64,000 bases of DNA. It comes from Trichosphaerium sp. ATCC 40318. Taxonomy: Eukaryota; Protista; Tubulinea. Position numbers and translations under genes: made by a program. The stretch lies in contig JALMLS010000271.1 in assembly GCA_038496445.1 (NCBI GenBank), forward strand, positions 145,883 to 209,882. The letters are read 5' to 3'. Below, piece after piece: positions 20,842-27,995 of the stretch. Positions within the stretch are counted from its first letter, which is position 1, and each line of letters begins with the position of its first letter. The notes under the pieces are model-generated. The model did no database searches and had not been told where the DNA came from. It saw only the letters and a list, made by a program, of their open reading frames with translations.

Positions 20842-21211
20842 TTATTTCCATGTTCGTGTGTATAAATGTGGATCGTGATACAAGACAACAGCTTGAGAGC
20901 TTAAAAAACTAGCCCAAAAACTAATAAGACACTGTTTTAACTTCGGGTGGATATAAATATATATCCATGTTGTAGATTTATCAAAGTGAGCTCCCTTGGA
21001 GCTTTCGTCAATTTTTGAAATTACTTCTTTGGAACTTCCTTCAATGAGCCCCAAACCGCCTTCATTAGTCTTACCATCCATTTTCCATCGTCTGATATTA
21101 CGTACGCGATGGCGTAGAGCAATTTGGGCAATTCTTGATGTATTTCCTGTGTTAGCGACTCCTGTTAGTCGAAACACGTTGGTTATGATGGAGAAGTAAC
21201 GTACGTAGCAT
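20842..21211 (-). CDS. Hypothetical small protein with Arg-rich, possibly mitochondrial-targeting N-terminus
   Basis: ATGCTAC|GTACGT..CAG splices into ORF 20842..21177, giving MLRVANTGNTSRIAQIALRHRVRNIRRW; 3' structure uncertain. Confidence 0.35.
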
Positions 21212-21466
21212 TTGTGTTATATAAAGTTGTCTGAGTTTAATTGACTGAAAAAGACTGAGTTCAGCTTCAGTGAATGTACTACTACTAGTGTTCTATCTTT
21301 GTGCCAGTTGTATCTACAAAGACTAGTTACAAAACAAGTCCGTTATTAGGAAGACCTTAATACAAAGAACATTTAAAACCAGGTACATATTCGACATGGA
21401 ACTGTAAGATGATGAACAACTTTTTATTTTGACTTAAGTTGTTGGTTTTTTTTTTCTTGTTCACAT

Positions 21467-24400
21467 TTATATCTTGTCTTCTTTCACCTCATCATCGCTG
21501 CTATTATTATCATGTTTTACTTTACTACGTTTACGAAAAGGAGATTTCTTTCCTTCGCTGGAAGCTTTTGGCTTCTTTTTCTTGCTTCGTTTTTGAGTTA
21601 CAGGCGTTTTGTCAGAACGTCCTTTTTTACTACTTGTACTGCTATTGCTTTTTTTAAGCTCTTCAATAGGAACATCATCATCACTGCTCTTATTCGTTTT
21701 ATCCAATACAGTAACCTTGCATTCGTTGTATGTTACAGCATGGTTAAGCTTCTTTTGGACTTTAAACCAAGACTAACTCTGTAAGACAATAACAAAGGAA
21801 AAAAAATTTGAAAGGAAAAAAAATTAAAGTGAAGAACGTACCTCTCTTACAGTAAATGAATACTTGCCATACCAAGATTTTTCAAAGCTTATAGTAACAG
21901 ATTCATCTTGTGATACAAATCCCTCTATAAAGTAGATTTTGAGGATAGGAGATCGCTGTAATTCAGAGAAAAATAAGTGGTTTTTTATTGAAAATCGTGC
22001 CTTTATTAATGCTCGCATAGGACACCCAACCGCTTATATTGAGGAAAGCAGTTAACTTAAATGTTGCAACATCGCCTGGATTAATAATTGTAGAAGGTGC
22101 TTCAGAGAGCCAGTTTCCTTGAAACAAACAAGTCAGCCTTTGAAGAAAAAAAATCAAACAATCTTCACTTTGTGTTATTTTACCTTTTTGAAGTTGCCAG
22201 TTGATACGCTTCAATACCTTTGTACTCTTATTCTCAATTTTGATCTCAATGTATCTACGGACACGTCTTATTTCTTTTGTTTCATCTAATTGTTCTTCTC
22301 GATCTATACACATGATGTTACGTCTCCAACAACCCAACAATTTCTTTATCCAAACTAAAAAATACGTACCAGTTTTGTATCGTCTAACTTCTGTGTGAAT
22401 GGCATCTATTGCTCTTGAAACACCTTTTTGTTTGGCTATTTGAGTTGCTATCATTGTTAATTAGTTACACTTGGAGGACAGATTCCAAATAGCCAAAAAT
22501 GAACTAAAACTGTTTTGGTTTTTTATGTACCAAACGATGCACATCTTGCAGCCATTTCCTTGTTGCCAACAAGCTTCATAATAGATTCTTTAAACCTCTT
22601 TGCATTCACACGTTTAATAGGAAGTGGAGATATACCCAAGCCCATCTTATAGACCTAAAAACAGCTTTAAGATGCGAATCCATCAAAAAAAGTTTAATAA
22701 TTCCGTACACGGCTTCCCCAAAACATTTGGTCTCCAAAGAAAGGAACAACCATTGTTGGTACACCAGCTCTGTTAAAAAATTAGTACAGGTGCTTTAAGT
22801 CAATTTATAAGGTGGGTATATACCTAAGACCTGCTGCTACAGTACCAGCGCCGCCATGGTGAACAACACCGGCCATTTGAGGGAATAGCCAGTCATGAGG
22901 TACACGTTCAAGCAAGAAAACATTATCAGGTTTTTTAATACCTTCACCAATACCACCCCATCCTAAGAAGAGTTAGTTACTAAGAGGTAGCTGTTCAACA
23001 TTGATTTGACAAACAAAATTTCCGGAAACTTTTGAGAAAAAAAAAAGTAAACGTTTTTTGGGGTTTTTTTTTACCTTGTATCATAACAGCTCGTTGTCCA
23101 CTTTCTTCCAAAGCAGTATAAATAGCGTTGGTAAGTCCATCAGGATCACCTACTGTGATAGAACCGAATCCAATGTAAATAGGTTTTGGTTTTTTAGAAA
23201 TAAACTCAACAAGCTTTGGATCAGGTTTCCATGTGCTGTAATATATTTAGTTGACTTTAAAGTACTGTTTTAACATACCTCGGACTATCCAAGAAAAAAT
23301 AACCACAAACGTGAATATGTGGACCCCAATCACTCGGTTTTGGAACTGTGTTAAAAAGTAAGAATAAAACAGGAATTGGGGGGTTTTCAAAGCCTGGGCG
23401 AAACGTACCTATAAGAGGACTGAAGCAGTACACAAATGGTACTTTACGATCATGTGCAAGACTAGATCCACCGAATCTGATCTCAGGTAAATCAATTGCT
23501 TTACGGAATTTATTAATCTTAGTGCGAAGAGGCTAAAGAAAAAAACCAAAAAAGTCAGTATCTTGAAGCTCCTACGTTTTGTGTTTTTCAAGTTAGTACC
23601 TGCCACATCCCTTGTTCTTCAATGAGTAAATGAGAGGAATAATTGTAAGCTGGGTTATCAAGGTTTTCAACATACCCAAAGGCCTACAAAAGTAAAGTAA
23701 ATCAAAAGCAATTTCGGAGGTTTTTTAAAGAGGTTATCAACACTTACATTAGGATATGCCCTAGTACGACTCCAAGGCATAGTAAAGGAGTTGATGATAG
23801 GTATCTAAACCAAAAATTAGAAATATTGCAGAGAACAACAGCAGGACGTCTGTGAAAAGACGAAAAAACCAGAAAAAACCTGAAACTGAATGAGGCTATA
23901 ACACTTACCTGAAGGCGTTCTGCAATATGAACACCAGCGAATGCAGGTGGATTTTGTATGATTAAATCACAATCCTCTTTGCATGCATCCCAACAAGACA
24001 TGCAGAGATCATAGATAAACTGTAAATATCTAGGTAAATCCTTTTTCACAAAGTCTAGACTGATGACACTAGTATTCACCATAAAATCCATTAAATCTCT
24101 TGGATCACCTATAAAATAATAAACCATAAGATGAGGGTTTACCAAACAAAGTTTCAAGAATATAGGGTGAAGATAGAAAAACATACCAGCTAAAAGTTCA
24201 AAATCGACTTTCCATTTTTTACAGAAATCTCTATGTGCTTCATGTGTCACAATAGTCACTTTATGACCTACGTAGAATACCTGTATTAGCAAGGAATACT
24301 ATACGAAACTTTAAAAAGAGTATCAACACTTACCATGGTCAATCATCTGCAAGGCTAATGCGACATAAGGTTGAACATCGCCTCTACTTCCGACAAGAAG

Positions 24401-26559
24401 AATTTTCACCTTCATCGATGGCATTGCGCTTAAAGCAGTTGTTGAAGTCACAACATCATCAATACCTCGCATAGAGTCCATTTCATCTCCTATAACATGA
24501 TTAGCAAGGATATTCTGGAATATAACAAAGAGTAATTGAGGGAGCACTGTTTACCTTCTTTGAACTGACCAACACGTTCCTTAATTTTTTTATACGCAGA
24601 ATCACGTGCTAAAAATCGACCGAACTCAAACCTTGATTTATCTTCTAATGTAATATTTACCCCGAACACTTTACCCTTCTTAAGTGTTTTAACATCAGAA
24701 TACTTGATTTCGACCTACAACCATAGATTGTTAGCGCAAGTCAAAAAACAATTAAAAAAAAGTCAAGAACAAACCTTCTGTTCAGACCATCCAACAACAA
24801 GGATTTTGCTCGACTTAAATAGGAGATAACGTTCTGTTATATACAAAGTTCCTGGTGTAGATTGGAAAATACCATTTGATAGGTTACAGACATATTCTAA
24901 CAACAAAGAAGTATCAGTATAGATCAAAACACGTTAGCGGGAAAAAAAAAAAAGTTTTGCATTTCTGCGTACTTCCAAGTACTCGTAGCTCGCTATCTGC
25001 TAGATGAGGAAACGCTTTTGTTAAAGCACGGAAGTTGTGTCCATTTCCAGACTTAACCTTGAGAATAGGAGCATCCTTTTGGAATGTTAAAAAACAGAAA
25101 TTTCTTTTTTTCGTACCCCAGCTTTGCTAGTATCGTGATCATCTAATACTTGTTGTAGCTCTTTTAACGTTGCTGGAGCATCTTGAAACCCAGAATATGT
25201 CGTCTAAATACAATACAATGAGTATTCTTGTAATAACATAAAAATCACGTGGGTACAGTTTCTTTATCATGAGATGTGACTAAAATGACATCTGCAAGTA
25301 CACCACTATCAATACAATGAACAGATTCGATTTTACTGAGTGTAGTATGAACCTAAGATGAAATGAGATGAAGACTGACATTATTTATAAACAAACTTCA
25401 TTGTACGCACCCTAAATGAGTCGGCACTATTTGAGTTTGCTTTTTGTTGTAATACTTTATCTATTGCACTAATCCATTCTCCTGTAAGCTTATGTGAAGA
25501 AGTGCAAGCATAATTAGGACCCCTTGAAGTTACAACTTGCAAAGAGTGATTATGCATTGTAAATTCCTTCTTTGCACGTGCAATAGAATGAACATCTGAT
25601 AATGACATTGTTACCTTAGGTTTATGCAAAGACTTGGGGAGGTAAATAAGTACAAGTGTTGGAGGAAGCAATAAACAGAAAACAGTTTTTTTTCAGGTAA
25701 TCGAAGTGTGAACTCTTTTTTTTTTTTTTTTTGTGTATCACAAAAATGGCATCACGCACTTTATTGTTTGCATAGCAACGGACAGCATCTTCTGTTAATA
25801 CTGCATAATAGTTCTTCCATGACCCCTTTTTTGTACCACCAATACATAACTCCATATATCCTTCCATTAAAACACCAAGCTTTAAAATTAAATAGGTAAG
25901 TAAGTCCAACATGGTTTGTCCGGAATGCGAGAAAAAATCAGACAAAAAAAAAACATGCGGAGAAATTTGGGTGTCTGTTTACCTTTAGATCCATGAAATC
26001 TGGTGTAACGAAGCATAAACGATGGTTTGTTACTACTAAATACCTAAATGTACTGTCAGGGCAGGTCAGACGCAAAATAAATAAAAACTAGTTCCAAAGT
26101 GCGTTAAAAAGACTCTACCCATTGTTTGATTGCGTATTGGACGTTAAACAGCAAGGATAGTCTAAAAAAATGACGTTAACGCAAATAATGGTAAAAAAGC
26201 CATGATGGTTGGCGTTAAGGTAAAACGAGTATTGGGGGCTGTATCATAAGGTCAGAAAGACGATTTAGAAACCTAAAAGTGAAATAGAATACAAATGGCT
26301 CGTTTCGGGTACAAGTTTGCCCCTGTATGCTGCAAGCCATATTACCGCGATTGGCGCACCTTTGATGAACGTTTCTGTTGTAGGCATACCAAATACTGCC
26401 CTTATTTGAGATTCACGCTCTGGGTTACCCGTAATAGTGGCGTCATCATTTATTATGCCAGAATCCTTTAAATCATGATAAATAAAACTGGCACGCTTTT
26501 GAAGGTTGCTCACTGCGCTGACAGTTAGGACGAAAACTATACGAGTACAACGTACACAT
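21467..26559 (-). CDS. Sterol 3-beta-glucosyltransferase (Ugt51/Atg26-like; GRAM-PH-GRAM-GT1) with extra C-terminal domain
   Basis: [74 protein letters not shown]; PH (KKGSWKNYYAVL..GEWISAI) and GRAM exons upstream. Last exon uncertain. Confidence 0.92.
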
Positions 26560-26787
26560 TACAGCCAAGTGGAGCAATGTACAAAACTAAAATTTAAAAA
26601 TTGAAATTCGTTGACTTTTTTTGTTTGGACTTCATTGACTTCAGAGCTTTAAAGATAGTCGCTCAACGCGGTTCTTGATACCACAGATATTGCCAGGCGT
26701 TAGTCGAGATTCATTCAACAACTCGATATTGCTTGCGACGTGCGAGGCATTCAAATGCTTATTTTTCTTACTCTAACAGTTTAACAG

Positions 26788-27995
<1,208 letters not shown>

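Follow-up and report, generated by a model that had tools for sequence, protein, structure and literature searches.

We report here that a sterol glucosyltransferase gene, located on the minus strand of a 64,000-nucleotide stretch of Trichosphaerium sp. ATCC 40318 (contig JALMLS010000271.1, positions 145,883 to 209,882; this whole stretch is called the window), continues beyond its catalytic region into a C-terminal extension that is real, in frame and expressed at the transcript level. The extension is made, in order, of a charged linker, a beta domain of about 120 residues and a lysine-rich tail of 76 residues. Judged from its domain content, the gene is a single PH-GRAM-GT1 sterol 3-beta-glucosyltransferase of the Ugt51/Atg26 type. 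The explanation that we favour, by a little over an even chance, is that such an enzyme has gained in this lineage the linker, an orphan beta sandwich and a disordered polybasic tail, which would form an extra membrane-binding unit. This is a real and new domain architecture, which probably targets the enzyme to a membrane lipid.

Public transcript contigs were aligned to positions 21100-27000 of the window, whose base composition (38% G+C) and introns (41-112 bases) are those of eukaryotic DNA. Contigs of the runs X1, X4 and X5, obtained from two studies, carry the joints 22447|22531, 22303|22370, 22117|22184 and 21924|22001, and the joint 21772|21842 is supported by the same three runs and by X2, a run from a third study on a related organism in which the splice into the last exon shows 2 letters changed out of 114 compared to the window. 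In the spliced contigs the last GT1 exon is joined in frame to four more exons (22303-21467). The intron 21925-22000 is of the GC-AG type and the remaining listed introns are GT-AG. A JGI transcript contig of 1771 nucleotides (L004, sample 3300016894) aligned to the window in 14 exon blocks running from 24091 to 21403 with two mismatches, and its product, the N-terminally truncated protein P0001 of 567 amino acids, is identical to the spliced exon model; this database protein was used as the reference sequence in the domain searches. L004 may share raw data with X1 and independent support was counted as three studies; splicing and frame agree across four runs from these studies and the JGI contig. 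X4 and X5 end in the loose sequence CCCGTACTCTGCGTTGATA, which we take to be the complement of the SMART cDNA oligonucleotide and which for this reason would mark these contigs as derived from RNA.

A preliminary description of this DNA, made from the sequence alone, had proposed that in-frame exons following the GT1 end (GVSRAIDAIH) add a peptide resembling aegerolysins or actinoporins. Splicing from the GT1 exon was confirmed at the RNA level by the joints given above, the transcript does not end before 22290 since the contigs run on to 21403, and the proposed peptide corresponds exactly to residues 376-488 of P0001 (YIEIKIENK...KVTVL). It starts about 33 residues after GVSRAIDAIH, the exon ending in TEVRRYKT being followed by DREEQLDETKEIRRVRR. 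The open reading frame does not stop at ...KVTVL but runs over 79 further residues (489-567), of which 76 form the tail. The acceptor in use is 21772, from which the frame stays open to the TAA at 21469-21467. Termination through the AG lying five bases upstream of 21772 (which would yield 'RES*') was ruled out because this acceptor is not used in the contigs, and a separate downstream gene was ruled out because the splices preserve the reading frame in all contigs.

The last GT1 exon (22447-22370) ends with ...GVSRAIDAIHTEVRRYKT and is followed by exon A (22184-22303; residues 360-399 of P0001; joints in X1, X4 and X5), which encodes the linker DREEQLDETKEIRRVRR, 17 nearly all charged residues (360-376), and the predicted first beta strands (YIEIKIENKSTKVLKRINWQLQK). 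The beta domain continues in exon B (22001-22117; GNWLSEAPSTIINPGDVATFKLTAFLNISGWVSYASINK; residues 400-438), is interrupted by the GC-AG intron (plus-strand ends CT..GC; X1, X4 and X5), and proceeds through exon C (21842-21924; EGFVSQDESVTISFEKSWYGKYSFTVRE; residues 439-466) to the beginning of exon D, where its predicted last strands are found (21698-21772; SWFKVQKKLNHAVTYNECKVTVLDK). As a whole the domain occupies positions 22268-21698 (residues 372-491), and its 120 residues include 5 Trp, 5 Tyr and 6 Phe. The remainder of exon D (21467-21697, with the stop codon) translates into the tail (residues 492-567), which is rich in serine and contains 19 Lys and 4 Arg (about 30% Lys/Arg), including the stretches KRSKKKKPK and FRKRSKVKH. 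The 3' untranslated region extends from 21466 to 21403, the end of L004, X5 reaching 21431. An open frame of 207 codons is thereby maintained over the four exons. The two introns flanking exon A (22304-22369 and 22118-22183) are each exactly 66 bases long, in frame and free of stop codons, so that a genomic open reading frame of 163 amino acids runs through them; the contigs show both introns only in the spliced form.

Regarding the enzyme itself, P0001 matched PF06722 with 65.3 bits (cut-off 31.7) and PF00201 with 28.4 bits (cut-off 19.5), and on this truncated protein PF03033 (Glyco_transf_28) reached 24.6 bits, its cut-off being 26.2. The GT1 region, which has a GT-B catalytic fold and is split into many short exons, spans 22370-24499 according to Pfam, to the L004 blocks and to tblastn with P0005 and P0007, two PH-GRAM-GT1 homologues; the entire N-terminal half aligned to positions 24499-23747. 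About 6,800 GT1 relatives were found, the best being about 50% identical, and the closest were from EukProt transcriptomes together with the sterol 3beta-glucosyltransferase of Arcella intermedia, which points to an amoebozoan or a similar protist as the probable source of the gene. Upstream, an exon-by-exon scan detected a PH domain, whose first exon (25760-25879; LGVLMEGYMEL...CYANNK, ends read from the sequence) scored 17.3 bits over profile positions 2-36 and whose second exon (25411-25632; X4 piece 25409-25632) gave a weak PH_9 match over positions 66-114, and a GRAM domain at 24554-24896 (exons 24896-24775 and 24714-24554), the first exon of which scored 20.0 bits. The joints 24712|24773 and 24488|24554 in the GRAM region are present in X4 and X2. 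The PH and GRAM scores are below the whole-domain cut-offs because a single exon carries only a third of the profile. The succession of PH, GRAM and GT-B is that of Ugt51/Atg26 and of Dictyostelium Ugt52 (EC 2.4.1.173), and the GT1 region is approximately 40-51% identical to many fungal and amoebozoan sterol 3-beta-glucosyltransferases; what distinguishes the window enzyme from this type is the additional, predicted folded C-terminal beta domain and the polybasic tail. In the same genome, a second and distant GT1 paralogue (L119/L122, G000:C62:130979-131800; 30-41% identical) ends about 60 residues past its catalytic domain and does not have the beta-sandwich domain.

The C-termini of the relatives indicate that additions at this place are not exceptional. 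After GT1, a PX domain is found in P0006 from Arcella intermedia (residues 495-567), a FYVE domain in P0010 (370-421) and a C2 domain in P0017 (571-666), each of them a lipid-binding module lying at the same position as the beta domain of the window gene, and many GT1 homologues have long C-terminal tails. The view that enzymes of the Ugt51/Atg26 type end at GT1 was therefore too strong. Since the relatives carry PX, FYVE and C2 domains there, the enzyme C-terminus appears to be a recurrent attachment point for membrane-targeting modules. By contrast with these three proteins, the module of the window gene is neither PX, FYVE nor a recognisable C2, and would be an orphan beta sandwich. The C-terminal tails of 120 GT1 homologues were compared with it, and none was similar.

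To what fold the extension corresponds was addressed with language-model features and structure prediction. The nearest neighbours of residues 372-491 in the language-model comparison were aegerolysin clusters, with similarities of 0.94, 0.93 and 0.92 (200-207 of 256 features shared) and 15 clusters at 0.9 or above, followed by actinoporins (0.91, 14 clusters), FB_lectin (0.88) and Nakanori (0.87); the measure is uncalibrated for parts of proteins, and 4-10 of 100 shuffled proteins also reach at least 0.9. With the linker included, the score was only 0.84. Because of the shuffled proteins the score on its own is modest evidence, and it gains weight because the two families had been named beforehand by the preliminary description. 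AlphaFold2 run on the single sequence of residues 372-491 gave a best model with nine strands, a predicted local distance difference test score (pLDDT) of 64.5 and a predicted template modelling score (pTM) of 0.59, with only one of five models exceeding a pLDDT of 40. When the linker was included (358-495) the pLDDT was 41.7; this model was unusable and its Foldseek matches were discarded as meaningless. Using the nine-strand model, Foldseek found no match in the PDB at E<0.001. Its top row was Cry37Aa1 (4rhz_B, non-significant E of 0.063), ostreolysin A ranking 14th; Cry37Aa is structurally homologous to Cry34Ab1 (PMC7387505). VIA-align listed an FHA domain (Z 7.3, 73 residues), C2 domains (6.0-7.2, 90-106), ostreolysin A (6.0, 102), actinoporins (5.4-5.9, 108-112) and pleurotolysin A (5.4, 99), all of them below the noise line of about 8 stated by the tool, and differences of less than 1 in Z are ties. 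The shape search of the ESM Atlas returned template modelling (TM) scores of 0.50 at most. The fold is thus assigned from one medium-confidence model and an uncalibrated language-model similarity. Taken together, these predictions support a compact all-beta domain in the extension and are consistent with a beta sandwich of lipid-binding type, without choosing among the classes; an aegerolysin-like fold is plausible, and in the explanation that we favour the aegerolysin/actinoporin type is the most probable one.

Along with the limits just given, the sequence searches weigh against this interpretation. No Pfam family matched at E<=10 with the individual exons, with residues 355-495 or with residues 370-567 of P0001, and this includes the profile hidden Markov models (HMMs) of aegerolysins (PF06355), actinoporins (PF06369) and C2 domains (PF00168). 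NCBIfam gave no match for the beta domain, nor did phmmer against the PDB sequences at E<=10. A word-index search of 5.8 billion clusters returned P0001 itself only for region 360-492 and no relatives for the beta domain alone, and a scan of metagenome loci found no relatives. In six-frame translation, the 70-Mb genome of the organism itself yielded only the exons of the gene, and two weak matches from another search were rejected as cyclase genes. An exhaustive phmmer search of 1.84 billion representatives, for which the query was the stop-free 163-residue stretch holding half of the domain, found only P0001 as a relative; P0002 and P0003, which matched this intron-containing query at E 8e-7 and 1e-4, were rejected as they consist of tandem repeats of about 59-71 residues and look like translated repeat DNA. 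The beta domain is, in these databases, an orphan by sequence, and no sequence-level link to any family was found.

Aegerolysins were examined in particular. Bacterial genomes reached with an E. coli tufA bait yielded genes recovered by PF06355 at 33-151 bits (Chromobacterium, 123 bits; Pseudomonadaceae, 151, 55 and 33 bits), and the same six-frame scan found none in the genome of the window. An alignment of three bacterial aegerolysins (A1) pulled 18 metagenome loci and led to a final alignment of 14 sequences. The comparison of the beta domain with these 14 aegerolysins by hhalign gave a score of 13.0 (P 0.19). This is at chance even though the two were aligned from N-terminus to N-terminus: shuffling the query gave 11.9 +/- 2.6, with 46 of 150 shuffles doing as well as the real sequence, and other beta-rich domains scored alike. 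Furthermore, the motifs invariant in A1 (WGKF, CGRxNxSSGTxG and WDCPW) are absent from the beta domain. With hhalign at chance and these motifs missing, membership of PF06355 is unsupported, and sequence comparison does not support membership of PF06369 either. The resemblance put forward in the preliminary description is thus supported in part, by the language-model neighbours and by Foldseek rows that are not significant, and not by the family HMMs or hhalign. It should be noted that one RahU-like aegerolysin gene of the Pseudomonadaceae (L094, G297:C55) shifts frame about halfway, which probably reflects either a pseudogene or a mistake in the assembly.

Such an isolated sequence could be a recently exonised, neutral segment that is transcribed without encoding a folded and selected domain. 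Searches covering about 15 billion proteins turned up no relative other than the organism's own transcript, which is compatible with this idea, as are the four poor AlphaFold models out of five and the in-frame, stop-free introns on both sides of exon A. The frame, however, has remained open for 207 codons across four exons, the related organism represented by X2 shares the last-exon splice with the few changes given above, and a single-sequence model with nine strands and this pTM would be unusual for a random sequence. The language-model score of 0.94 also speaks against it. We therefore regard a neutral origin as very improbable.

We then compared the domain with the known families. Aegerolysins (PF06355; ostreolysin A6, pleurotolysin A, RahU, Cry34Ab1) are alike in size (about 120-140 residues), all-beta and rich in aromatic residues, and differ in that the window domain lacks their profile similarity and signature motifs. 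They bind membranes that contain sterol together with sphingolipid (PMC9505663, PMC7985367), and the known members are treated as small stand-alone proteins in a 2022 review in which a natural fusion to an enzyme is not mentioned (PMC9505663). The full-text literature search retrieved no paper joining aegerolysins with sterol glucosyltransferases or with Amoebozoa. Actinoporins (PF06369; FraC, bryoporin, HALT-1) are about 50 residues longer and possess an N-terminal amphipathic pore-forming helix, in place of which the window domain is preceded by the highly charged linker. The protein has no amphipathic helix and a pore-forming toxin was ruled out on this ground; a signal peptide would not be expected, because the domain stands at the C-terminus and the rest of the protein consists of cytosolic domains. 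We give clearly less than an even chance to the tentative possibility that the domain is a genuine, extremely diverged lipid sensor of the aegerolysin type, naturally fused to the enzyme that modifies the sensed lipid.

The product of this gene belongs to the sterol glucosyltransferase family and shows a new architecture. Its added domain resembles aegerolysins or actinoporins, fails all the sequence tests for belonging to them, and could just as well be a divergent C2. If it were a C2 domain, highly divergent and independent of calcium, its role would again be membrane targeting, and the relative P0017 does carry a true C2 C-terminal of GT1. Against this identification, the Pfam C2 profile gave no match at E<=10, the families listed for the 100 nearest language-model clusters include no C2 set, and few aspartates are read from the sequence at the would-be calcium-binding loops, none of which is obvious. 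The slightly higher VIA-align values of C2 domains are ties, and identity in the structural alignments was 6-9% for C2 compared to 11-14% for ostreolysin and pleurotolysin A. A C2 of this sort thus appears unlikely, and the gene would in that case be an ordinary variant of domain shuffling.

Alternatively, the beta sandwich might be a protein-protein or regulatory module (FHA-like, Ig-like or other) that does not bind lipid directly, with a tail serving as a nuclear localisation signal or regulated by phosphorylation. The ESM Atlas lists FHA, CueP and DUF families at a TM score of about 0.5, and the basic stretches KRSKKKKPK and KRSKVKH look like nuclear localisation signals of the classical type; that the tail could be such a signal also counts against a role in membrane binding. 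The FHA match, however, spans only 61% of the domain, the enzyme acts on a membrane sterol, and all accessory domains that can be identified in the family are lipid readers (PH, GRAM, PX, FYVE, C2). In addition, the language-model neighbours belong to cytolysin-fold families that bind lipid or glycan, and the high Trp/Tyr content fits with interfacial binding. We consider this alternative distinctly improbable.

The genome of the window also contains an actinoporin-like exon (L009:1203-2185; G000:C38, ~336810-337792; PF06369, 41.4 bits) directly upstream of a BAG exon (PF02179, 27.9 bits), BAG being a co-chaperone domain of Hsp70. The two exons look like one gene, a predicted fusion, and BLASTP found no similarity between the beta domain and this actinoporin-like exon. 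From its sequence, the actinoporin-BAG gene would give a second example of an apparently intracellular protein of several domains that includes a fold of the cytolysin type, and a precedent within the same genome.

At its other end, the mRNA of the glucosyltransferase gene is placed to start near 26595, because the X4 contig ends there in the presumed cDNA oligonucleotide. Several short upstream open reading frames follow, then, near 26385, the first ATG that shares the frame of the GRAM-like N-terminus (GGT ATG CCT), which is the putative start, and a 5' intron is possible with a candidate acceptor at about 26518. The neighbouring divergent gene (26786-27900, plus strand) contains the P-loop kinase motif GGPGSGKG, is adenylate or UMP-CMP kinase-like, and is covered by its own spliced contigs in X4 and X5.

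The substrate of sterol glucosyltransferases is embedded in the membrane, and accessory lipid readers set the site of action of these enzymes; the textbook example is yeast Atg26, targeted through its GRAM domain in pexophagy. According to the favoured explanation, the PH and GRAM domains would mediate phosphoinositide-dependent recruitment as in known members of the family. Exposed Trp/Tyr loops would let the beta sandwich bind a given membrane lipid, in the manner of aegerolysins, actinoporins and C2 domains, and the lysine-rich tail would contribute electrostatic contacts with acidic lipids. Sandwich and tail would in this way provide second and third membrane contacts, act as a coincidence detector and confine the enzyme to membranes of a certain lipid composition; PH, GRAM and the C-terminal unit together would decide on which membrane sterol is glucosylated. 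Targeting to sterol-rich membranes, as proposed in the preliminary description, is a reasonable inference, and a sterol-rich domain would be an attractive target because aegerolysins recognise sterol together with sphingolipid (PMC9505663, PMC7985367).

These results suggest that lipid readers are swapped at the C-terminal end of this enzyme, PX, FYVE or C2 in the relatives and an orphan beta sandwich here. If the domain binds sterol and sphingolipid as aegerolysins do, it would constitute a natural targeting device that senses the substrate, could serve as a new genetically encoded cytosolic lipid probe, and would carry the cytolysin-type fold beyond secreted toxins into modules that target proteins within the cell. 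Should it be a true diverged aegerolysin, this gene would be the first natural fusion of an aegerolysin to an enzyme, with a cytosolic reader of sterol/sphingolipid domains steering the synthesis of steryl glucosides. Considered with the actinoporin-BAG gene, it would then mean that in this protist lineage cytolysin folds have been reused to direct proteins to membranes inside the cell.

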